From Trichosphaerium sp. ATCC 40318 (lineage: Eukaryota > Protista > Tubulinea), in the NCBI GenBank assembly GCA_038496445.1, contig JALMLS010000356.1, positions 85,973-149,972 on the forward strand: a DNA stretch of 64,000 nt. The letters run 5' to 3'. A program made the translations under genes and the position numbers. The notes below the pieces were generated by a model, which was given only the letters and a program-made list of their open reading frames with translations, did not search any database and was not told where the DNA came from. Within the stretch, counting starts at the first letter, position 1. The number at the start of each line of letters is the position of its first letter. Positions 857 through 64,000 of the stretch are shown here, in pieces.

Positions 857-3306
857 ATGAGTGAGCGGAGGTTGTCAAGGCGTGTGGATTCATCCTCAAT
901 AGCAGCTGTAAAGAAAAACAGGCGCCGTAGCGTTATGTTTCGTACAAGCGGTAGAACGTTTAGAGAAAGAGACCAAGAGCAATCTAGAAAGCTAGTCGAA
1001 GATCAACGCAAGTTTGAAGACCAGTTGCGCAAAGATGAAAAAGAATACGCAAAGATACGTGAAGGCTGGAATAAAGCCGATAGAGAGCGTAAACGTAAAG
1101 AGAACGACGAAAAACGCCGAGAAGAGAGTTTTAAAAAACAACTCCTTAAAAAGAAGGAACAAGCTGAAAAAGAAGCTAGAGCGCTTTATGAAGCTCATAA
1201 GAGGAAGAATAAAATAAAAACAGAGCGGTACGACTATTGTACTTTAATATTGTTTTGTTGTTGCTGAAAACGACCTCTTTTGTACTCATTTCGGCATAGG
1301 TACAAAGCCGAAATAGAACGAGAGATTAATAGTCTCAAACGTCGCAAGCTAGAGATCGATATTCGCAAAAACGAGCGTATAAAGCGCTGGAAGCTCAAAA
1401 CCAACGATAAAAACGAAAGGTAAACAAACATACTTAAACGGTCACTAACAACCCATTAAAGACATGAACAACTCCAACAAACATGGGTTGAGCGACTATC
1501 TGAGCGTATGAAGGAAAGACAGGAGTACAGACGTATTCAGCTTCGAGAGAGCGTGGAAGCACGAACAGAGTACGATCTCGATCACCATCTTGATTCTAGT
1601 GGTTAATATAGACTTTAGACGTAACTCTGTGATGCTTTACAGCTACCATAATACGTGGGACGAACGACGTATTAAGGCAAAGCAAGAATGGAATGCTAAG
1701 CATCCTTGGCAACCACCTAAGAAACTTGTTGTCAAAAAGATTGCGTTTGTACCCAAAAAAAGTAAGTTTTAATTTCTTCTGTTTTCTTGAGCTTGGCCTT
1801 CGAATAAGTGGTTCTAAGCATGTACAATAGGGGTTAAGAAACCAAAGAAGAAGGATGAAGGTGATTTGGATGACCTTGGGCTATCTGATTCGGAAGATGA
1901 CAGCGATGATGAAGTTGGTGATTTGAGGTTAGGATATTGCGTTCGCCTGATTTCTAATACTTTGTTAGCGATTTAAAGAACGATTTGGACGCTGAGGATG
2001 ATTTCTTCTCATCACGTGAAGATGAGGAAGTAAAACCTGTAAATGGGTCTGAAAGTGCAGGTATAGATGATGCACAATCAGAAGATAGCGTTGATAGCAA
2101 CGCTGATAAAGAAGATATTGACAAAAAACAAAAGGATGAAACTGAGAATCCTGAAGATAAAACAGATACTGTTAGCCCTGAAGAAGATTCTTTTGCTGAT
2201 GTCGATGGGTTAAGTGATGAAGAAGGTCTTGACGGATTAGATAGTCCACGTAGTGGAAAAGAAGATATTAAAATCGGTTCGAAGCCCGAAACAGATGAGC
2301 ACAAAGCAAGTGATGAAGAAGATTCGTTTAACGATGCTGACAGAAAAAGTACCGGCGGCATCAAGTTAGATGAACATGAAGATATCATAGCAGGTGATAT
2401 ACACCTTGATATTGATTTCTGTGGAGGAGATGATAGTTCTGAAGATTTAAGCGATGATGAAGACTTAGATGGCTTAAAAGAGAAAGTAAATCATTCAGGA
2501 AATGAAGTCGATATTGACTTCTCTGATGATGATACAGCATCAAATAATAGTGTCACAGCAGGTGATATTCATCTAGATTTTGATAATGTGGATGATGATA
2601 TTGAATTGAGTGATGAGGATGAGTTTGATGATGAAAAACTTGAGAAAGACTTAGACGGTTTAAGTGATTTTGGTGATGATTCTGCTGGAGATACTAAAGT
2701 ACAAGATGACGATAAATATGATAGTTTAAGTGATGAAGATGTAAAGCTAGGCGATAAAGATGATGAAGACTCGTTTAATGATGTAGATGGTTTAGATAGC
2801 TTAAGTGACGATGACGTAAAGTTAAGTGATGAAGATGTTAAGTTAAGCGATGCAGATGAAGAGGACTCGTTTAATGATGTGGGCGGTTTGAGTGATGAAG
2901 ATGTAAAGTTAAGTGACGAAGATGAAGAAGACTCTTTTAATGACGTAGATGGTTTGAGTGATGACGATTTGAGTAAGTGCTTCTTTTTTCAATTTTCCAA
3001 TTTTTTCTTCTTTGCAATTTGCGTTGTACACGTGTTTTGTTGCTAGAGTAAGTTTACTTTTTTTTGTTTTGCTTACTTTATGTTTAGAATTATCAGATGA
3101 CGATGTTTTGAGTACAGAGGTACGTATTGTTTTTAGTAGAAATTGCTTCAAAAAATGTTATTTCGTGATAGTACTTTTACCAGCTTTGGTTTGTTGTTGT
3201 ACCTTTTCTTAACTCTTTAACCACCTATTAGGATGAACCTAAAAAGAACGGCGATGATGTAATGGATGAAGATAATTTTGATGACCTAGATGATGACGAG
3301 TGGTAG
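857..3306 (+). CDS. Coiled-coil plus very long Asp/Glu-rich protein ending in DDLDDDEW
   Basis: ORFs 857-1267 and 1985-3046 are joined by GT-AG introns. The last exon, 3232-3306, reads DEPKKNGDDVMDEDNFDDLDDDEW*. Confidence 0.75.
2722..2972 (+). repeat. Coding acidic tandem repeats (LSDEDVKL / EDSFNDVDGL units)
   Basis: Recurring ttaagtgatgaagatgtaaag and gaagactcgtttaatga units in the acidic exon. Confidence 0.75.
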
Positions 3307-3936: not shown

Positions 3937-5619
3937 ATGCAGAAATTAGAACAAAAACGGAAGCCAAATTACAGTACTCGGGTTTGCTCTGTTCTACAAC
4001 TTCCAAATGAACTTCAGACGTACATATCTACGTTTGATCGGGAAACGTTCTCAAAGTTCCACGTGCTATCAAAAAGAGCTGCTACGAACACACATTATGA
4101 TCAAAATCTGAATAAAAAAGGTGTTTGGATTTTTTGGTATGATGATGGCTCTCGAAGGAAAACAAAAACGATGTTCAAAGGTAAGCGACATGGAGAGATG
4201 AAGAAATGGTATAAGAACGGACAGTTATTGCTCCAGGCTTGGTACAGCGATGATGAGATGCATGGTTTGTATAACAGTTGGCATGAAGATGGACAATGTC
4301 ATGAAGAATGTACTTTTGCTAGTGGCCAGGAGAATGGAGACGTAAGGCGGTGGTATGAGAACGGACAAATAATGGTACATAGTAAGTTTGTTCACGGAAA
4401 AAGGAATGGTGAGAGCAAGGTGTGGCATGACAATGGACAACTCGAATGGGAAACCTTCTTTGTTGATGGCAAAGAAAATGGTGAATACAAAGAATGGTAT
4501 GATAATGGACAGATGCATATTGTTACTGTGTATGTTGACGGCTTAAGGCAAGGCGATTTCAAAACGTGGTATAAGCACGGTCAAATAAAATCAACAAAAA
4601 AGTATGTTGACAACAAGAAGCATGGCGAAGTCAAAGAATGGTATTATGAAGGACAACTTGCACTGAATACTACATTTATTAATGGCGACCAAAATGGTGA
4701 GCGTGTGGAGTGGTATGAACATGGTCAAGTTAAAGAACAAAGTACATGGGTTGATGGGAAAAAAAATGGTTTTCACAAGCAATGGTATGAACATGGTCAA
4801 GTTAAAGAACAAAGTACATGGGTTGATGGGAAAAAAAATGGTTTTCAAAAGCAATGGTGTGAGGATGGACAACTTGATTGGCAAAGTACATGGGTTGATG
4901 GAAAACCAAATGGTTATTGCAAACAATGGCATGAGAATGGACAACTTGCTTATCAAACAATGTATGTTGATGGCAGGGAGAATGGTGAGAGCAAACAATG
5001 GTGTAAGGATGGACAACTTGTGATACAAACTACGTATGTTGATGGCAAGCGCAATGGCGAATACAAACAATGGCATGAGAATGGACAACTTGCGATACAA
5101 ACTACGTATGTTGATGGCAAGCGCAATGGCGAATACAAACAATGGCGTTGGGGTGGACAACTTGCACTACATACTACATTTATTGATGGCAACCAGAATG
5201 GTGAGCGTATGGAGTGGTATGATAATGGTCAACTTAACACACAAAGTATGTGGGTTGATGGAAAACCAAATGGTTATCACAAACAATGGGAAAAGAATGG
5301 ACAACTTGTGATACAAACTACGTATGTTGATGGCAAGCGCAATGGCGAATACAAACAATGGGAAAAGAATGGACAACTTGCGATACAAACTACGTATGTT
5401 GATGGCAAGCGCAATGGCGAATACAAAGAATGGCGTTGGGGTGGACAACTTGCTTGGCAAAGTACATGGGTTGATGGAAAACCAAATGGTTATCTCAAAC
5501 AATGGCATGAGAATGGACAACTTGCTTATCAAACAATGTATGTTGATGGCAGGGAGATTGGTGAGAGCAAACAATGGTATAAGGATGGACAACCCAGAGA
5601 ACCAACACTAGACTTTTGA
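3937..5619 (+). CDS. F-box-like motif plus MORN-variant (YwqK-like) repeat protein, intronless
   Basis: Uninterrupted 560-aa ORF with N-terminal LQLPNELQTYISTF, then about 20 24-aa repeats of the form WYENGQL...YVDGKRNGEYKQ. Confidence 0.85.
   Translation: MQKLEQKRKPNYSTRVCSVLQLPNELQTYISTFDRETFSKFHVLSKRAATNTHYDQNLNKKGVWIFWYDDGSRRKTKTMFKGKRHGEMKKWYKNGQLLLQAWYSDDEMHGLYNSWHEDGQCHEECTFASGQENGDVRRWYENGQIMVHSKFVHGKRNGESKVWHDNGQLEWETFFVDGKENGEYKEWYDNGQMHIVTVYVDGLRQGDFKTWYKHGQIKSTKKYVDNKKHGEVKEWYYEGQLALNTTFINGDQNGERVEWYEHGQVKEQSTWVDGKKNGFHKQWYEHGQVKEQSTWVDGKKNGFQKQWCEDGQLDWQSTWVDGKPNGYCKQWHENGQLAYQTMYVDGRENGESKQWCKDGQLVIQTTYVDGKRNGEYKQWHENGQLAIQTTYVDGKRNGEYKQWRWGGQLALHTTFIDGNQNGERMEWYDNGQLNTQSMWVDGKPNGYHKQWEKNGQLVIQTTYVDGKRNGEYKQWEKNGQLAIQTTYVDGKRNGEYKEWRWGGQLAWQSTWVDGKPNGYLKQWHENGQLAYQTMYVDGREIGESKQWYKDGQPREPTLDF
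4711..5590 (+). repeat. 72-bp near-identical coding tandem repeats
   Basis: 4711-4782 and 4783-4854 are nearly identical. gatacaaactacgtatgttgatggcaagcgcaatggcgaatacaaa recurs four times. Confidence 0.9.
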
Positions 5620-43449: not shown

Positions 43450-46400
43450 TTATAGTACAATTCCTCTTGATACTTCAGCTCTCTCTGAAATATTACTTTG
43501 TGATGAAAGATCTTCATCATCATAATTCTTGTTATCTTCTTTTTGTTTTTGTTTTTTTTTCGCTTTTTTTAAAAGCTTATTTTTCTCAGAAGCAGGCATA
43601 TTAAGTAGTGGCCTGATCTTCTTATCAATATGTGGTAACGATAAATCAGGTCTGAACAGAAATAAGCGGTCAATAATGATGTGAATTAAAGCACGTGAAG
43701 TGAGTCACAAGTAAAATTTATGACGTTACATCTGTAAGACTATACTTCTCTGAAAAACTACAGTACATACCTTAACTTTTTAATAGTTGCTATTAAAGTA
43801 TCCATATCTCCAGGCTTCCACCAATAAGGAACAGCAACGATTGTTATACCTTAATTACAATTAGTTGTTTCCACTCAAAAAGGTTTTATGAACGAAAAAA
43901 AGACTGGACAAAAACCCTCATGTTGTATCATCTCAGATGTAGTCTTACCATGTTCATGACACAATATTAGCTTCTCTATATCTCTACCTTGTTGTAGATC
44001 TGTAGGACCCCAGTGATTCATATTATCTAAGTAATGTTGTTCACCTTGATATTCTAATCCAAGGTTCAAGCTAGGAATAAACACATCAAGTGTTATCTTT
44101 GCTCTAAATGACTCATTTTGAAGATCTAGTAAATACTCTTCTACAATATCTTCTTTAGGGAATAAGTCCTTCGAGCATTGGACCAGTAAACTAAAGCGAA
44201 AACAAAAGTAAAAAAACAATGAAAAAGAAGCAAAACGAAAATAATGTTCTGTTTCAGTGTTGTCATTACCGTTGTGTAGCTCGTTTTCCAGAACTACGAA
44301 ATTCTTCCCAGTCCCATGCAAATTCTGGATAAACACGTTCTAGAACTTTTGGGTAGTAAGCAATGAAGCCACCACCTTTCCAGCTTTCAATGTGACCTTT
44401 TGTTATAGAATACCAATCAGATAGTTCTTTTACCCTTAGCTTTTCTTCAATTACGCGAATAAACGTTTCTATATTATCCATTTTACGCCAATAATTTGTT
44501 GGCGCCTTACCTTAATAACAAAAGGTAAGTATGCAGTCAAAAGAGAGTAAAATCAAAAGAAGAAAAAAACAAGAAAGACTCAGCAGAAAGATACGCAACT
44601 GAAACGAAGTGGTTCCCAATCATAGTCGGGATATAACTTTTCTACCATTATTTGAATACTTCCTTTACTTTGTCTTTACATAGAATAAAAGTAAGAACAT
44701 GGCGAAGAACCTTTAGCAAAAGAAAAAAAAAAAGATGACAAAACGAACGAAAAAAAACATACACAAGTAATCCTCCACCACCCAGTTTCTGAATATCTTT
44801 TACAGAAACACTATACCAGTCTTGAACACTAGTAATTTTGAATTCTTTCTTCATCTTGAGTAAAGACAATGAGCAACAAGCAAAAGAAGCTTAGAAATAA
44901 AAAAACAAGTACTTCTTCTAAAAATACTGCTTGATTTTGCTTTGACAACCAAAACCCTTTTGGTACTTTACCTATAGCGTCAAAGGAGTAAGAAAGCGGG
45001 CTACTAAATAACTAAGCGAAAAATGTGTACCAAACTTCCAAGCTTTCCATAGATGATCAGGATACATAGTACTAAGCATATCTTGAACAGAGTTGCCAAA
45101 GTGTCTAAAGAAAAATAAGAAAAGCCGGCTGATTACAATATTAAATCACACGATAAAACAACGACATCAATCTATTTGATTAATAGTAGTTAAAAGACCA
45201 AGTAGCGCAAAGGCTGCTTGCTACAAAATCAAAAAAAAAGTTAAATAAATTGTCAAAGCAAAAAAACGTACTGGAGAATGCCTGCTCCTCCAACCTTTTT
45301 TATATCGTAATAACCATACTTATACCAATCATCTAGGTCTTTAATATCAAGCATACGTTCTGCCTATACGGTTGCATTAGTTACATATACATAAATAATG
45401 CACAAAGAACCACACGTGTTTGAAAAACTCTATCTTATGAGATTTCGACAACCAAAAGTTCTTTGACATTACACCTACAAACCTCGATTAAACAACCTTA
45501 AAACGCTTACTTCAAGCAAATAGTAGATTTAATACATACCAAACTTCCATGGTACCCATGGATATTCAGGGTACATGCAAGACAGTAAATACTTGAGCGA
45601 GAAACGATACTTTCTATATCATAGAAAACTATGAGAACACGTGAAGGTGTGATGAATGATGACGTACTTAATAAGTGCCGCTCCACCTAGTCTAGTTATT
45701 GTATGTAATGGAATATTATACCATCTATCTATGGAGTATATATTTAACGTTTTCTCTGCTTCTCTTACAAAGTCAAGAACGTTATCTTCATTTTCCCAAC
45801 AAAACACAGGTGCAATCACTAGTATTCCAATTAATTTATGTTGCAATACAGACTAAAAGTACTCATACCGAATTTCCACGGGAACCATTTTACATCACAG
45901 TATATATGAGATACCATACGGAATACAGAGGCACCATAATATTCACTACAAAGAGGGTTAGTGAATTATCTTATATTTTTCTTAAATAAGCGAAACATTA
46001 AACTTCAATTGCGCTCAAGTTCAATCTTTCATAGGTTTAAAAGATTGCCGTTGATATCAAAAGGGCGTTTAATTTAGCCTACCTGAAAACTTATAGTAGT
46101 CATTGGGTAGTGTACATACGGCTACGTTGACTATGTAAAAAAAAGTACCTTACAAAACTTGCAGTAGAAATGCTCAAGATATCCTTCGCTGGTATTGTAT
46201 ACCAATCATCCAGTTTACTTATACCAAGTTTTTTTTCAGCCTATTGTATAGCTTCAATATTAAACCCTCTTAGCTGTTGTATAATTACCTCAATAATGAA
46301 CTTTACCCTATTTTCTAATGAGAACCAAAATTTTGGTGGTACACGGTCTATTAAAAGGTCATAAACAAAGGAGACTAAATCTACTGTATAAAAGAAATAG

Positions 46401-47424
46401 AAATTAAAATAGAATGTAGTACGAAAGTCCCAAGGAAGCCATTTGTGAAACGAATAATTGTACTGAAGCATAAGTATAATTGACTTTGAATATTCACTGT
46501 AAGAAATCGTTAACTTGAAGCTTCAACGACTTACGCCCTTAAGGATGATAACCCTACAAGCTACATACCTAAGAAATTCTTCACCACCTTGAAAATCAAG
46601 TATATCATTTGTTGTAACACTGTACCAATCATCCAAAGTTTTTAGAGGCAACTCTTCTGCAACCTAGTTTTTTTCAACAAAAAATTTTTGTCACGTGAAA
46701 CGCACGTGTTCTAGGAAGTCTCTTTGTGCTTTCTTATCACACCATGTAGTAGGACAAGGTACTCCTTAAATAATAATAAGCTCTAGATTGCATGTATTTC
46801 CAGAAAAAAAACCAATAGTTCAACATGAGAACAAACTTTGGAATTCTGGTTCTGGTCAGCGTACTGAATTTCCATGGAAGCCATTTTTTTGTTGTTAGTG
46901 TAGAATTTAATATATTACATACTGAGTAATCGTATTGGCTAATAACATTAAGTACAAATTCAGTTAAGCGGTAATAAAAATTATTCAAAAAAATCATGTC
47001 ATTTGAAACATACCTAACGAGTTCTCTGCCTCCTAAATACCCAAAATCACGAATACGTACTCCATACCAATCTTCAGGCTTTTTAATATCGAATTTAATA
47101 GCAGCCTAGACTCGTTTAAGCGAAAAGGAAGAAAATTCAAGCGTGTCAAATGATTTTAACAGCTTTACTGTCAAACTATGTTTAAACAGTTACTAGACGC
47201 GCATTCACTGGTTTTTAAACATATTCTAAGGCTTTATAGCAAGTTTTAACGGAAATGCCAACTTTTAAACTAAAATGACGTATTACCTCGTCCAAAAATC
47301 GTTTTCTGTTCTCTAGTTTATCCCAGTAGTTCGGTTGAGCTTGTAATATTGTTTCATACTTTATTTTAAGTTTAAGCCCTTGACGGGGGACTCCTTTGGA
47401 TACTAGCGCATGAGTCACGCTCAT
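43450..47424 (-). CDS. Seven ~70-aa Trp-rich repeats plus a C-terminal PD-(D/E)XK (Vsr/DUF559/EDxHD-like) nuclease domain
   Basis: Repeats follow P.xFW...N...F...DWYxV....I...GG..L...YP...W.PWKF. The C-terminal domain reads LDVFIPSLNLGLEYQGEQHY...RDIEKLILC..GITIVAVPYWW. Confidence 0.85.
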
Positions 47425-47514: not shown

Positions 47515-48853
47515 ATGCCAGCGCAAGGCGCCCCTGACGTTCTTGTCATTCCAACCGCTCGTAAAGACGCTTTTAAAACTGGTCGTTGGACAGTATTTGT
47601 CGTTTTAATCGCCGTGGTTATCGTTATTATTTTACAGCTAAATAAACCAAAGAATACATGTGGTAATGGCGTTTTGGATGATTCTGAAGAATGTGATAAC
47701 GGAACTGGTTGTACACTTTGTAAATGTGATGATGGTTACATGCCTGCCTCTACACTTGGATGTAAACCCAGTACGAGCTTTAAAATAAGGATTTATTTCG
47801 TTTGAGGCAAAGAAAGTTTTCAAGTCTTATTTTGTACCTTCGGTCTCAGTTCCTGCCTTTAGAGTGCGGTAATGGCGTCCTAGATGATAGAGAAGAATGC
47901 GATGGTACTCTTTACTGTACACCTTCGTGTCAGTGTAAACAAGGAACAATCAGTAATGGCAGTGGAAGCTGTGGTACTTTTTTTTGGAGTTTTTCATTTT
48001 ACCACGTGTTTTCCAAAAAAATGCGTCACTACTTTTTTTCTTGACGATGGCGAGTGATTTTTTATTGCGTTTTAGGTAAACACTTTAATGTCATTATGGA
48101 TTTATATGAGGGACCTTTTCCAGAACTGTTTCTTGTAAAGGAAGAACACATTAGAGATTTTTTACAACGAAATGGTGTCTTTGTAACAATAGTCAAACGT
48201 GATGACATTAAGAACTCACAACAGTGTACAGCACCTCTACTATATGTAGTAAGTATATCAACACCCAGAGTAGAAACATACCTTGATGAGAAACTGTGTA
48301 AGGGTACGTGATAAAACACAAACTCTGACAAACTATTTGCTAATTTTCTGGGTTTAGAAACAGCTTGTCAAGGACAAGTCACGATTATGCCTTTAGTACC
48401 TGAAGTCCATGAACATGTAACATTCCCTCAATATTCTGAAAAATGTAATGCAAAACTTATTCCAGTTATAACAAATGGTACAACAATCAAAGCCGATCAA
48501 ACATTACAAATACTCAGTTTATAAATGGTAAAAAAATATCTCAAAAGAAAATTGTAGTAAAAAATAAATGTTAAGCGCCAACAAATAGACATAGCATGAT
48601 GGACCTTACTTGAATTGATAAACAATCTGCTGAAAGTGAACCTCCAGTGCATAAAAAACCAACCAAGCCGAAAAATAGAATTTGTTTTGGAAGTGACATG
48701 TGTGTTTTTTACCAATTTAAAACGTTTTCGAAGTCACATATCTCCTCGATCTTTGCTCATAAAGTTCCAGGTGTAGAAGGTAGCGACCTTTATAGGATGT
48801 GTATCAAATCACTTAAGTGGAAGACCTATCACAACAGCATACACCGCTTGTAA
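47515..48853 (+). CDS. Type II membrane protein with CGNG..D..EECD cysteine-rich repeats
   Basis: TM segment WTVFVVLIAVVIVIIL, then two CGNGVLDD.EECD repeats (Myxococcus Cys-rich/DUF4215-like). Confidence 0.75.
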
Positions 48854-57859: not shown

Positions 57860-58702
57860 TTAATACCAAATGTATCCTAGTTCACCATCTATCCACATGC
57901 GCTGTGACTTTAGTTCTCCGTTCTCATGCCATTGTTTAGTTTCGCCATGCCGTTTATCATTAGCCCACATGGACTGTTCCTGAAGTTGTCCATTCTCATA
58001 CCACTCTTTAGTTTCACCGTGTAGCTTATCATCAACCCACATGGACTGTTCCTGAACTTGTCCATTTGCATACCAATTTTTGCGTTCACCCTGTTGTTTA
58101 CCATCAACAAACATGAACTGAAACTTTAGTTGTCCATTTTCATGCCATCCTCTACTGTCACCACTTGGTTTATTATCAACCCACATGCATCGTATCTGAA
58201 GTTGTCCATTTTCATGCCAATATTTACACTCACCTTGTAGTGTATTATTTACATAATGGAACAACTCTTTCAATTGACCATTTTTGTACCACTTTTTGTA
58301 CTCTCCATTGAATGCATCATTGACAACATTACCTTGTTCCATCAGTTCACCGCTTTGATACCATCGTTTGAAATCTCCATGACATACACAGTTGACAGTA
58401 TTATACAGCTCTTTTAATTGACCCTTCTTGTACCATACTTTACATGGTCCATTCACTACATGTTTATGCATTTGTACCTCTCCACTTGTATACCAACGTG
58501 TCCACATTCCTTTCTTTTTTAATGAATCATCAAAATGAGTATTAATTGCTGCTCTCTTTGATAGAGTATGGAATTTTGTGAATGCTTCAATATTGAAAGT
58601 ACAAATATATGTTTGAAGTTCACATGGAATATCCAATAAACCAAATGAGACCAATTTACAGTGAAGGTTTTTTTGCTTTGCACTTGACTGTAAAAAAAAC
58701 AA
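57860..58702 (-). CDS. F-box-like plus MORN-variant repeat protein, paralogue of 3937
   Basis: LLDIPCELQTYICTF...FTKFHTLSKRAAINTHF followed by about 9 repeats. An acceptor-like site near 58690 suggests a short upstream exon (ATG near 58781). Confidence 0.85.
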   Translation of the reverse strand: MFFLQSSAKQKNLHCKLVSFGLLDIPCELQTYICTFNIEAFTKFHTLSKRAAINTHFDDSLKKKGMWTRWYTSGEVQMHKHVVNGPCKVWYKKGQLKELYNTVNCVCHGDFKRWYQSGELMEQGNVVNDAFNGEYKKWYKNGQLKELFHYVNNTLQGECKYWHENGQLQIRCMWVDNKPSGDSRGWHENGQLKFQFMFVDGKQQGERKNWYANGQVQEQSMWVDDKLHGETKEWYENGQLQEQSMWANDKRHGETKQWHENGELKSQRMWIDGELGYIWY

Positions 58703-62136: not shown

Positions 62137-64000
62137 TTACATAGGTACAAGCCCTAGTTGTTGCTGCTTTGTATAAACCAAACTAACATTACATAAAGTA
62201 CGTTTTTCCCAATAGCTATTCATTGTTTCAATATCTCCAGTGTCAAAGCAATATTGTAATACAACCAAGAAAGAATCAATGTTTATAACTTCTGGATTAT
62301 TTTCAAGTCCATCATCAAAGAACTTGAATAATTGTTTCTTTGTACCAGATGTTGCTATTAGTTTAATCATAATCTCATATGAACGTTGATCAATACCAAA
62401 ATTCTGTTGTATTGTCTTATATAGTTCAAGTCCTTTCTGTAAGTCACCAATCTTTAAGAAACCTTCAAGTAAAATATTTATCTGACTTGTATTTACTTTT
62501 ACTTTCATTATCTCACTCATTGTTTCTAAAAGTTCTGTAGCTGCTGGTATATCTTCACAAATACATGATATAGCTGTGTTTATATGAGGATCCTTATCAG
62601 AAAAAACAGAAGTAAGCATAACACACAAAACGTTACACAAAAAAAAGAATCAGAAAAGAAAAAAAAAAAAAAAAAGAAAAACTAAAAGCGTGTTCAAGCT
62701 CTTTTATGTTTTCAGGCAATAACTTGGCATCATTGTTTCCTCATGCGTAGTGATTACAGTGATGCAATTAAGAACACTTTCATCCGTCACGGGTTTTTTT
62801 TGTTGCTTGAGTTTGAAAAAGAATACGAAGACGTAGGTTTGGGTTTATACCTTGTCATCATCATTATCACCATAAATCGTGTCATTTATGAAGTTAATCA
62901 AAGATAATTTATACTCTTTTCTCTTTTCTTCTGATATAACAGACTCAAATATAGCTTTCCATAGAAATGCATAGGTTGCAAGTGTCTCGTCTAAATAGAG
63001 AAATGAGCCAAGAGCTTGAACCTAAAAAAAAACTGTCCCGAAAAAAATAGGCAAACACGGCCTTTGTTGTTATTATTATTTTGGAGTATGTAATAAAGTG
63101 TAATTACACTGGCAGTAGAAAGTGAATTAAAAGAAAATTGTGTGATTCTTGAGTCACCACGTGAAGAAAAAAACAAAAAAAACTAGATAAGTGCGTTTGG
63201 AGACTTCTTCTATTTTACCCTCCGCGCTGGCCAGAGAATAGTAGTTTGTAGTAAAATACGTAAAGTGTAGCAGATATAAATTGTAATAGATTATGCAAAC
63301 GTACGTTCAAGTGATTCAGCAAGGGCACGTTCAAACTCTTCCAAAGGCAATTCCATCAAAATAATAGAAAGAAGGTATGGACGTACAAAGTACTCTTTAC
63401 ACTCTATCATTTTACTCCTTATGGCCATAATATGTTGTAATAGATCATTAACACGTGGTACATCCTTTGATATTGTTAATGCTTTAAGGAACCCTTCAGC
63501 TATTATCGTAAAGTGCATATACACAGCACGTTTATGAAGTGCATGCCATAGTTCTGAAGCGCTCTTAATATCACCATTATATAAATAATTCTTTAAAAGA
63601 CAAGAAAACATTAAATGGGGTATCTCATTATCACGCTATGGAAAGGGTGTTAGAAAGACTGTAAGAAAAAACAGTTTGAAGAGGTTTTTTTTTTTTGTTT
63701 TGTAACACGTACAAGGTCTTTAGCTTGTAGACAAAGTTGGTAGAGTAAATATCCAGCTTCTCTATCACAAATAGATAGAGACAATGCCATTTGTTTGTAT
63801 AAAGCGGTTGCAACGTTGTGTAACGGTACATTACGTAGAGGTTCACAGAACTATGACTTAGTTAAAAAAACTGGCTTAATAGACTTAAAGAAAAGAAAGA
63901 AAAAAAACAGACAGACGTCTTGCTGAAGCTTCCAGGCAACCTTGATCAGAAAGAGGTTGTTATTTTTATACGACGTACTTTTACTATTTTTTCAACTTCC
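62137..64000 (-). CDS. Pentatricopeptide-repeat (PPR)-like protein, 5' part outside the window
   Basis: INILLEGFLKIGDLQKGLELYKTI, SYEIMIKLIATSG and FSCLLKNYLYNGDIKSASELW. Confidence 0.75.

Follow-up and report, generated by a model that had tools for sequence, protein, structure and literature searches.

A 75-residue repeat array joined to a predicted Vsr/EDxHD-type nuclease domain in Trichosphaerium, a member of a large unnamed protein family

The window, the 64-kb stretch of Trichosphaerium DNA that was analysed, contains on its minus strand an intact eukaryotic gene of 21 exons (47424-43450, hand-built splice model; Table 1). Splicing yields an open frame of 2199 nt (732 codons plus TAA) that runs from the ATG at 47424 to the TAA at 43450, exactly the limits given by an earlier sequence-only reading, and the 20 introns, all GT-AG, measure 42-203 nt. 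No in-frame ATG precedes 47424, and a divergent neighbouring gene begins 90 bp away, at 47515. The encoded protein comprises a basic leader of 26 residues, seven repeats of 75 residues, a C-terminal domain of ~120 residues and a Lys-rich tail. Family proteins of the same build align with it end to end (28-33% identity, E 1e-95 to 1e-108), residues 21-671 pairing with 23-673 of the homologue P0005, and under the chosen splicing all seven repeats stay in register, free of indels, with a consensus drawn from 1258 repeats in 176 proteins. When the six-frame translation of the window was searched with a seven-repeat profile, every repeat exon was found (E down to 5e-28) and nothing elsewhere scored better than E 0.86; the array is therefore far beyond chance, and the 64 kb hold no second copy or paralogue. 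An Rfam scan of the window gave no match.

Table 1. Features of the window gene and the protein it encodes (position 1 is the first letter of the window).
Feature	Residues	Position	Strand	Description
Whole coding region		43450..47424	-	21 exons, 20 introns; splice model and end-to-end homologue alignment
N-terminal leader	1-26	47347..47424	-	no acidic residue in first 23 residues, five Lys/Arg
Repeat 1	27-101	46866..47346	-	three exon pieces, core EDWYGV, repeat-profile score 70.1 bits
Repeat 2	102-177	46424..46865	-	exons 59/95/74 nt, core DDWYSV
Repeat 3	178-253	45870..46423	-	exons 59/92/77 nt, core DDWYTI
Repeat 4	254-328	45541..45869	-	two exons 151/74 nt, core DRWYNI
Repeat 5	329-403	45032..45540	-	exons 59/92/74 nt, core DDWYKY
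Repeat 6	404-478	44601..45031	-	exons 59/92/74 nt, core QDWYSV, best profile score (84.7 bits)
Repeat 7	479-553	44287..44600	-	nearly all in one exon (44510-44270), core SDWYSI
Predicted Vsr/EDxHD-type nuclease domain	554-672	43633..44286	-	from the end of exon 18, through exons 19 and 20, into exon 21
Conserved polar codons		43971..44141	-	E576 44141-44139, D594 44087-44085, E605 44054-44052
Conserved polar codons (rest)		43971..44141	-	H611 44036-44034, D629 43982-43980, K632 43973-43971
C-terminal tail	673-732	43453..43632	-	low complexity, KKAKKKQKQK cluster, then acidic stretch

The seven repeats span residues 27-553 and are on average 30% identical in pairwise comparison, and all seven cores picked out by the sequence-only reading occur in the minus-strand translation. 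The unit is 75 residues (225 coding nt) rather than the 70 first proposed, and 75 is also the modal spacing of the 1258 family repeats. Repeat 3 carries ST in place of the GG turn, and repeat 4 has lost the first intron of the unit. Information content along the repeat reveals a conserved aromatic/Gly/Pro scaffold with many variable surface positions and no outstanding pair; three orthologous protein pairs weakly indicate variability at positions 1, 3, 29, 36, 58 and 66. Comparison with eight family proteins uncovered no repeat-by-repeat orthology, so that no true orthologue of the window protein is at hand.

Pfam scans of single window exons matched neither the repeat nor the nuclease, and a PDB sequence search with an 89-repeat profile returned nothing. 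Weak matches of family proteins to CH, SAM_TNK, Myb_Rap1 and Chromo all lay far below cut-off and were set aside; a SAM-like or helix-hairpin-helix fold is one idea for the repeat. Judged by profile searches, the repeat has no Pfam family of its own, and its sole relation appears to be bacterial DUF4046 (PF13255, uncharacterised Bacillus proteins, on which we found no literature), with which it shares the skeleton P-x-x-Y-W ... G ... S-x-x-x-L-L-x-x-x-Y-P. The family repeat profile recognises five consecutive repeats in P0172 of Bacillus sp. EB600 (115 bits in total; per-repeat E 5e-7 to 3e-12, computed against that single protein), and P0172 passes the DUF4046 cut-off (24.8 vs 22.8 bits). Eukaryotic members either score too low for DUF4046 (P0159 has 20.1 bits vs the gathering score of 22.8) or, like window repeat 7, give no match at all; the family profile all the same supports homology of the repeats. 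The nuclease profile of the window family finds no match in the C-terminal part of P0172.

A family search was run with the exon of repeat 7 (44510-44270) as query, and this one repeat retrieved 2280 protein clusters. The 176 proteins that were fetched carry between 2 and 25 repeats, a wide variation in repeat number of the kind that the sequence-only reading had proposed to count, and 133 of them include the nuclease. Named sources are Cavostelium, with at least eight transcripts or paralogues, and Heterolobosea sp. BB2, with at least two transcripts; one assembly holds at least four family loci on separate contigs, each longer than 0.8 Mb. The eukaryotic members are thus multigene, dispersed and expressed. 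Most protein pairs lack position-by-position orthology of their repeats, which indicates that the arrays turn over fast. Outside eukaryotes, the same build of repeats and nuclease occurs in Bacillus sp. EB600, a SAR324 MAG, a Planctomycetota MAG and a giant-virus-like contig, where the member (P0171) adjoins topoisomerase II, DUF5824 and an HMG-box gene. P0171 is the only viral member with the 75-residue repeat that was found: of 109 nuclease-bearing loci, viral or prokaryotic, none carries it (0 of 80 IMG/VR loci), and P0171 as query retrieved no viral relative with the repeat. The repeat alignment is too degenerate for a pattern scan of viral relatives. The family turned up under no name, the eukaryotic repeat in no Pfam family, and we found no describing paper; an existing functional characterisation, which the sequence-only reading had named as grounds for refutation, thus did not come to light. 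The family is very large, unnamed and unstudied, and is spread over protists, a few bacteria and one giant virus.

The C-terminal domain of the window protein is, by sequence and predicted structure, a putative Vsr/EDxHD-type PD-(D/E)XK nuclease. The string on which this assignment had first been based (LDVFIP...LEYQGEQHY...RDIEK...C...GITIVAVPYWW) is present in the minus-strand translation, and the proposed fusion of a tandem array to such a nuclease is upheld by phage profile matches, by the predicted fold of P0005 and by conserved residues. Exon 19 matches phrog_27771 (E 2.4e-7), phrog_559 (E 2.6e-7), phrog_9084 'homing endonuclease' (E 1.2e-4) and phrog_7140 'intron encoded nuclease' (E 4.4e-4), and the matches of a homologue's nuclease domain are stronger (phrog_559 8e-14, phrog_9084 1e-9). 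Across 103 family nuclease domains, D and K never vary, whereas E, H and D are each kept in 99% and the first E in 89%; the window protein retains all of these catalytic-type residues (E576, D594, E605, H611, D629 and K632). The spacing of 17 between D594 and H611 equals that of the catalytic pair D196/H213 in I-Bth0305I and is close to that of D51/H69 in Vsr, residues being equated by order and spacing (PMC3239194, PMC11879112).

Matches of the nuclease to Pfam families are weaker. DUF2726 is touched by 22 of the 103 domains (P0012 scores 23.6 bits vs a gathering score of 24.7), no eukaryotic family member reaches a Pfam gathering score for the nuclease, and the giant-virus member P0171 alone passes that of DUF559. 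The RAP model PF08373 matches none of the window exons and one of the 103 domains (E 0.03). The kinship with RAP proteins suggested by the sequence-only reading thus holds for the overall build, which is like that of organellar helical-repeat and RAP/FASTK proteins, but not for membership of the RAP family. PDB sequence searches with the nuclease exon and with the 103-domain profile returned nothing.

Structures were predicted on P0005, which is 32% identical to the window protein overall and ~40% identical in the nuclease domain. The AF2 model of P0005 residues 553-673 (pLDDT 90.2) has the order H-E-H-E-E-H-E-H, with an alpha-beta-beta-beta-alpha-beta core that corresponds to the restriction-endonuclease-like fold. 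In Foldseek searches of the PDB, I-Bth0305I (3r3p) gave the best single-domain superposition (probability 0.99, TM 0.67), followed by Vsr (1vsr/1cw0, probability 0.96), and the top lists consist almost entirely of PD-(D/E)XK enzymes, so the fold predicted from the letters is recovered in this homologue. BFVD contributes 69 viral matches at E<=1e-3, to homing endonucleases, DUF559, VSR or restriction endonucleases. A second model, of three repeats plus nuclease (pLDDT 94.8, pTM 0.80), predicts about five helices in each repeat and shows the last three repeats packing on each other and on the nuclease as one confidently predicted body. In the PDB it is matched best by T. gondii mitoribosome large-subunit chains, 6z1p_AS (Tetrahymena mL104), 6rd4 chain 2 (Polytomella) and FASTKD4 (9gek). 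The E-values of these matches are all >= 0.0086, PDB Foldseek E-values never going down to 1e-3. Two of these chains are templates that have been named for helical-repeat plus RAP proteins (PMC8190603).

At the other end of the protein, the basic N-terminus pointed out earlier is confirmed (Table 1), and an acid-free leader proves to be the rule in the family. Judged by composition, with many starts taken from automatic gene calls on metagenomes, acidic residues make up 3.1% of 75 family leaders vs 12.2% of the remaining protein, and 47 of the 75 have no D/E in their first 20 residues, vs 5% of control windows. The window leader is compatible in composition with these presequence-like leaders and is a possible mitochondrial presequence. 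The tail (pI 9.65) is lacking in most homologues. Splicing into its exon is backed by an RPDL motif that the window protein has in common with P0012 and P0036, and the rest of the tail is without homologue support.

What follows on nucleic-acid binding, cleavage and localisation of the window protein is inference. The reading that we prefer, at a probability of roughly 0.45, is that of a mitochondrion-targeted, sequence-specific endonuclease that acts on organellar transcripts in a manner analogous to FASTK/RAP proteins. The repeat array would lie along an extended nucleic acid and provide sequence specificity, with the number and make-up of the repeats setting the target, and would deliver the C-terminal domain, whose Asp/His pair may support metal-dependent cutting as in Vsr and I-Bth0305I. 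Eukaryotic members, the window protein included, would enter mitochondria through the basic, acid-free leader and serve there as gene-specific RNA-processing endonucleases, most likely on organellar transcripts. They could thereby do the work of FASTK/RAP, OPR-RAP and HPR-RAP proteins in lineages that reportedly have no RAP proteins. FASTKD5, an established site-specific mitochondrial endoribonuclease that combines helical repeats with a Vsr-like C terminus, cleaves mitochondrial pre-mRNAs in vitro (PMC12242768). If this reading is right, one exon gives access to a family that numbers over two thousand sequence clusters, and these include candidate factors for cutting and maturing mitochondrial transcripts in Amoebozoa and Excavata, filling a gap in organelle biology.

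A possible though doubtful alternative is a DNA endonuclease descended from free-standing homing endonucleases, in which an array of DNA-binding modules would recognise an extended DNA site for the EDxHD/Vsr domain to nick or cut; equally doubtful is its extension, by which the eukaryotic copies are domesticated or selfish and take part in mtDNA recombination, repair or copy selection, or act on invading DNA. The nearest relatives of the nuclease, in sequence and in fold, are DNA nucleases of the homing, restriction or Vsr type from phages and giant viruses; that its sequence relatives are such DNA enzymes and not RAP proteins argues against an RNA role. Bacteria, phages and giant viruses also place the same nuclease domain after DUF4379/CapR-like treble-clef arrays, modules to which a role in DNA-binding specificity has been ascribed (PMC12350094). 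The full 75-residue-repeat build is found, moreover, in bacteria and on the giant-virus-like contig, where no organelle exists, and this counts against an organellar role. The near-invariance of the catalytic residues is typical of obligate cutters, FASTKD4 by comparison acting without nuclease activity (PMC11879112), and the fast turnover of the arrays points in the same direction. The window gene, however, is an intron-rich, spliced nuclear gene with ordinary neighbours, single in the 64 kb and situated in no intron or intein. Dispersed, expressed eukaryotic multigene families with presequence-like leaders conform to the pattern of organellar RNA factors, and a need for at least eight site-specific DNA cutters per mitochondrion is hard to see. 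PADLOC, run on nine family or related proteins, returned no defence-system match, which weighs against a DNA endonuclease as well.

The whole-architecture fold matches, to mitoribosome-bound proteins and FASTKD4, would also suit a non-cutting nucleic-acid binder, whose array and Vsr-like domain would do no more than hold RNA; it might stabilise the RNA, act in polyadenylation or translation, or sit at the periphery of the mitoribosome. The Vsr-like pocket of FASTKD4 is catalytically dispensable (PMC11879112), and RAP and HPR proteins decorate the mitoribosome of T. gondii (PMC11652630). We nevertheless consider such a protein improbable: the Asp/His pair lost in FASTKD4 survives in the window protein and in 99% of the 103 domains, as do E605, D629 and K632, and this conservation makes a dead site unlikely. 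Because the members keep a complete active site, unlike FASTKD4, the family is well suited to the study of the Vsr-type DNA nuclease fold, possibly acting on RNA.

The Lys cluster in the tail resembles a nuclear localisation signal, which argues against an organellar role and would agree with a nuclear or cytosolic nuclease that has no organelle tie, for example a factor in defence or counter-defence between amoebae and giant viruses that was exchanged between host and virus. The neighbourhood of P0171, the many giant-virus proteins that share the nuclease fold and the quick diversification of the arrays are consistent with such a factor. Basic, acid-free leaders in about two thirds of the leader-bearing eukaryotic members, the single viral member against 80 IMG/VR nuclease loci lacking the repeat, and the missing PADLOC match all speak the other way, and we give this explanation little chance.

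We regard it as unlikely that the five-helix, 75-residue module is a new natural modular reader of nucleic acid, each repeat using a few of its surface positions to read a small, fixed number of nucleotides. If that view were true, arrays of 2-25 repeats would spell the targets, and the Vsr-type nuclease attached to them would always be active. Next to the zinc-finger, TALE and PPR designs, the family would then in effect supply a fourth 'programmable nuclease' scaffold from nature, as well as a long-missed RAP/FASTK counterpart of amoebae and heteroloboseans, and its array-plus-nuclease design would be of interest for engineering sequence-specific cutters.

Like PPR, OPR, HPR, Pumilio and TALE proteins, some of which are fused to nucleases, the window family has degenerate tandem repeats with a conserved hydrophobic/aromatic scaffold, variable surface positions and a repeat number that differs between paralogues. 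The TALE- or PPR-like array envisaged by the sequence-only reading stands as regards tandem repetition and variable number, but not as regards the unit, which is a five-helix module twice as long as their 34-38-residue hairpin and has no evident small hypervariable 'code' set. The closest resemblance in overall design is to the FASTK/RAP proteins (FASTKD1-5, apicomplexan and algal HPR-RAP/OPR-RAP, mL104), which share the N-terminal leader (a putative targeting leader in the window family), the helical-repeat array of variable length, the C-terminal Vsr-like domain and the organisation in multigene families; in Foldseek, solved structures of these proteins match the whole architecture best. The window family differs in having no significant match to the RAP model or, by sequence, to any PDB chain, no FAST_1/FAST_2 modules, and a unit of ~five helices where FASTK/RAP repeats are helical hairpins of 34-40 residues. 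FASTKD4 has Asn for the catalytic His, whereas the window family keeps the full Asp/His pair. Amoebozoa and Excavata are reported to have no RAP proteins (PMC8190603), and the window family is present in Amoebozoa and Heterolobosea.

With I-Bth0305I, phage Hef-type nucleases (PHROGs 559, 9084, 7140 and 3339) and Vsr, the window family shares the fold and the E...D...(E)...H...D pattern, to which it adds the invariant K632. EDxHD homing endonucleases are likewise bipartite, with separate specificity modules and a C-terminal catalytic domain, although the specificity part of the window family is not of NUMOD/HTH type. In the CapR/DUF4379 plus EDxHD/Vsr proteins of phages, giant viruses and bacteria, 3-12 small tandem modules adjoin a nuclease that is 30-40% identical to that of the window family (tblastn), and in 2025 these modules were read as the DNA-binding specificity modules of phage group II intron HEGs (PMC12350094). 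They are Cys-rich treble-clef zinc fingers of ~60 residues, whereas the window repeat is Trp-rich and helical and has no Cys/His ligand pattern. Homology between the two, suggested by GG-x-x-L...Y, was rejected (hhalign probability 4.6%). The same nuclease domain has thus been paired with at least two unrelated repeat modules, the zinc-finger DUF4379 and the helical 75-residue unit, which shows a recurring evolutionary solution.

The gene region in the window has a G+C content of 33-39%, the DNA is eukaryotic nuclear in character, and the minus-strand coding pieces of the gene are broken every 60-150 nt. Reading the three minus-strand frames and joining coding pieces solely at GT...AG boundaries gave a model of 21 exons with a 2199-nt open frame encoding 732 aa, whose ATG and TAA coincide with the gene limits proposed by the sequence-only reading. 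No upstream in-frame ATG occurs in the minus-strand translation, and the assigned start is probably right because a divergent gene begins only 90 bp from it, ATG to ATG. The two genes probably have a very short bidirectional promoter in common. In the neighbour's product, a transmembrane segment precedes Cys-rich CGNGVLDD.EECD repeats, whose coding sequence is interrupted by introns. All seven repeat cores and the C-terminal motifs that had been read from the DNA are found in the spliced protein, the unit being 75 aa rather than the 70 first given. Within the C-terminal tail, which most homologues lack, lie a KKAKKKQKQK cluster and a run of acidic residues. The tail resembles a signal for nuclear localisation or a segment that binds nucleic acids unspecifically, and is an odd partner for a mitochondrial leader.

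Coordinates of the gene, its protein segments and other open reading frames in the window
Feature	Protein position	Window coordinates	Strand	Basis
Gene model, ATG to TAA		47424-43450	-	splice model
Leader	26 aa at N-terminus		-	window protein sequence
Seven repeats	aa 27-553		-	window protein sequence
C-terminal domain	aa 554-672		-	window protein sequence
Low-complexity tail with Lys cluster	60 aa	43453-43632	-	last exon
Stretch with the three-exon repeat modules		47424-44270	-	
Repeat 7		44272-44508	-	
Divergent neighbour gene		47515-48050	+	
MORN_2-rich ORF		3937-5619	+	E 4e-49
MORN_2-rich ORF		57860-58702	-	E 6e-35
ORF fragment, weak PPR_2 match		62137-62640	-	E 1e-4, under cut-off

Three other reading frames in the window deserve mention. 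Two long intronless ORFs are rich in MORN_2 (YwqK-like) repeats. The plus-strand copy has its nearest relatives in bacteria (Bacteroidota and Parachlamydiales, 24-45% identity) and no close eukaryotic match, which may reflect horizontal acquisition by a genome that is otherwise intron-rich. The third, a fragment resembling PPR_2, may belong to a gene for a pentatricopeptide-repeat protein, which would be a further organellar RNA factor encoded in the window.

Each repeat is encoded by a module of three exons (59, 92 and 74 nt; phases 1, 0 and 2). The module's first intron is missing from repeat 4 and both introns are missing from repeat 7, so that some intron loss came after the array had expanded from an intron-containing unit. 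The periodicity of the split module indicates that the unit already contained its introns when tandem duplication enlarged the array, and that this took place in a eukaryotic genome. The seven repeats share a mean pairwise identity of 30% (n=7), and a profile built from them recovered every repeat exon in the six-frame translation of the 64-kb window and no further copies elsewhere in it. Across 1258 repeats from 176 proteins the modal spacing is 75 and the consensus reads.P..yW.s.eNQr.Fmd.L..kLnlks.eDWy.vs...i...GG..LL..Y..Sl..lL..iYPe..W, which the spliced window repeats match without indels, supporting our splice choices. The scaffold is strongly conserved at P2, W6, N11, F15, D30, W31, G43, G44, L47, L48, Y51, Y63, P64 and W68, and many surface positions are free to vary. 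The repeat has no PDB relatives by sequence, and no Pfam model reached above its cut-off against the eukaryotic repeats. Residues 5-59 of repeat 7 show weak matches to Pfam DUF1140 (E 0.012) and phrog_1083 (E 0.0038), short phage and bacterial families of unknown function; phages may carry single-copy versions of the module.

The C-terminal domain is well supported, by homology and by modelling, as a PD-(D/E)XK nuclease of the Vsr/EDxHD type. Exon 19 matches the phage families phrog_27771 (2.4e-7), phrog_559 (2.6e-7), phrog_9084 'homing endonuclease' (1.2e-4) and phrog_7140 'intron encoded nuclease' (4.4e-4), and the homologous domain of P0005, a family protein 32% identical to the window protein and used for all structure models, matches the same families with E up to 8e-14. 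Pfam gave near-threshold matches only: 22 of the 103 domains hit DUF2726, the giant-virus member hits DUF559, and RAP came up a single time, at 0.03. An AlphaFold2 model of the P0005 domain, built on an alignment of the 103 domains (pLDDT 90.2, pTM 0.83), runs helix, strand, short helix, strand, strand, helix, strand, helix. No PDB structure matched it at E 1e-3. The PDB lists are nonetheless filled almost entirely by PD-(D/E)XK nucleases (BstEII, TnsA, Can2, R2 endonuclease, PvuRts1I, McrC, Vsr, I-Bth0305I and FASTKD4), matches that are each weak alone and mutually consistent, and the top single-domain superpositions are I-Bth0305I (probability 0.99, TM 0.67) and Vsr (0.96). Among predicted viral structures, 69 matched at E<=1e-3, every one through the nuclease domain, under the labels homing endonuclease, group I intron protein, VSR endonuclease, DUF559, DUF2726 and restriction endonuclease.

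Over the 103 domains, the active site has an invariant Asp and an invariant Lys; conservation is 99% for a Glu, a His and another Asp, and 89% for a Glu further upstream. The window protein keeps every one of them (E576, D594, E605, H611, D629 and K632). From Asp to His the spacing is 17, the same as in the catalytic pair D196/H213 of I-Bth0305I and one residue shorter than for D51/H69 in Vsr (PMC3239194, PMC11879112). The phage-family matches, the fold of P0005 and this conserved active site together underlie the nuclease assignment and bear out the Vsr/EDxHD-like endonuclease recognised from the DNA. Nuclease activity is predicted for the family from this residue conservation, and a protein that binds without cutting is one of the two readings we hold least probable.

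A larger model of the last three repeats and nuclease of P0005 (94-sequence alignment; pLDDT 94.8, pTM 0.80) shows about five helices per repeat: a long first helix bearing N-Q-R...F...L, two short helices around D-W-Y, a fourth past the G-G turn and a fifth that closes with Y-P. So high a pTM suggests that the repeats hold a fixed mutual arrangement rather than lying as beads on a string. In the PDB this model is matched best (E 0.009-0.5) by large-subunit chains of the T. gondii mitoribosome, Tetrahymena 6z1p_AS, FASTKD4 and chain 2 of Polytomella 6rd4. A survey of 'helical repeats followed by RAP' took Tetrahymena mL104 (6z1p_AS) and the chain-2 protein of Polytomella (there as entry 6rd6) for its templates (PMC8190603). 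RAP and HPR proteins, of which the T. gondii chains matched here may be examples, are known from that mitoribosome (PMC11652630).

A search of 1.84 billion representative proteins with repeat 7 alone, which lies almost wholly in one exon, returned 2280 clusters at E<=1e-3, of which 34 reached E<=1e-30; the proteins contained between 2 and 21 stretches that matched. Among 176 family sequences the repeat count ranges from 2 to 25, the repeat-number variation that the sequence-only reading had proposed to count, and 133 carry the C-terminal domain of the window protein, nearly always at the extreme end. Many members align end to end with the window protein (28-33% identity, E down to 5e-108), and almost none carries a name. 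Named sources comprise the amoebozoan Cavostelium apophysatum, with at least eight different family transcripts, Heterolobosea sp. BB2, with at least two, and one MMETSP transcript. In one ENA assembly there are at least four members (5, 7, 7 and 25 repeats), each on its own contig of >0.8 Mb and surrounded by ordinary eukaryotic genes. Immediately upstream of the gene for one family protein (P0152), a separate 147-aa open frame (2492-2932 (+) of its locus, L001) encodes two more family repeats; a frameshift or short intron has probably cut the gene call short, the real protein having some nine or ten repeats.

Outside eukaryotes, the same build was found in four places: on a giant-virus-like contig (beside topoisomerase II, DUF5824 and HMG-box genes), in Bacillus sp. 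EB600, and in SAR324 and Planctomycetota MAGs; the Bacillus and SAR324 neighbourhoods are truly bacterial. The Bacillus gene (GCA_024494385.1, locus L115, 8001-9581) is a lone DUF4046 member amid flagellin genes in a flagellar gene cluster, a typical variable 'island' position, and the SAR324 gene adjoins a PemK toxin gene.

Evidence on place and substrate points two ways, to an organellar RNA role and to a DNA role. Our best explanation, which we put at roughly 45%, is that the window protein would act as a mitochondrial sequence-specific endonuclease with RNA as its substrate. In eukaryotic members with a 15-80-aa leader, acidic residues make up 3.1% of the leader versus 12.2% elsewhere, and 47 of 75 leaders have no Asp or Glu within the first 20 residues, as against 5% of control windows. 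Judged by composition, many look like textbook presequences; that of the window protein has no acidic residue in 23 and five Lys/Arg. A defence role outside organelles, to which such leaders run counter, shares last place with the non-cutting binder. The family forms a dispersed, expressed multigene set whose arrays vary, in the manner of PPR, OPR, HPR and FASTK/RAP factors, and RAP is undetected in the groups to which the family's named hosts belong (PMC8190603). A direct precedent is FASTKD5, which combines helical repeats with a Vsr-like C terminus and cuts mitochondrial pre-mRNAs in vitro (PMC12242768).

A DNA-cutting version of the endonuclease ranks second and seems to us rather unlikely. 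In its favour, all detectable sequence relatives of the nuclease are DNA enzymes, the entire build is present in bacteria and a giant virus, no catalytic residue has been lost, and the arrays turn over fast. At about 40% whole-length identity, positional repeat orthology is kept only in the pairs P0005/P0151, P0019/P0032 and P0153/P0156, and is absent from P0013/P0031, P0017/P0065, P0124/P0144 and about 40 other pairs of family proteins, where a repeat resembles its positional counterpart in the partner no more closely than any other repeat; this suggests that arrays are homogenised or quickly rebuilt. Within the three orthologous pairs (21 repeats), orthologous repeats agree at positions 1, 3, 29, 36, 58 and 66, at which neighbouring repeats vary; these six candidates are only a lead towards a putative TALE/PPR-like recognition code.

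Compared with known systems, an RNA-cutting mitochondrial endonuclease of this design comes closest in working principle to FASTK/RAP-type organellar factors and bipartite EDxHD homing endonucleases. The window protein is no member of the RAP family, as it leaves the RAP model unmatched and differs in repeat type, and its spliced nuclear gene excludes it from homing endonucleases in the strict sense. Its repeat is related to DUF4046, yet falls below that model's threshold; five repeats of the Bacillus sp. EB600 protein match the family repeat profile, and we found no paper that mentions DUF4046. In bacteria, phages and giant viruses, zinc-finger DUF4379/CapR repeats stand ahead of the same nuclease domain and have been interpreted as the DNA-binding modules that give homing endonucleases their specificity (PMC12350094); kinship of the 75-aa repeat with them was rejected on repeat comparison. 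The nuclease fold and the overall design are known, whereas the repeat module and the family it defines are so far undescribed.
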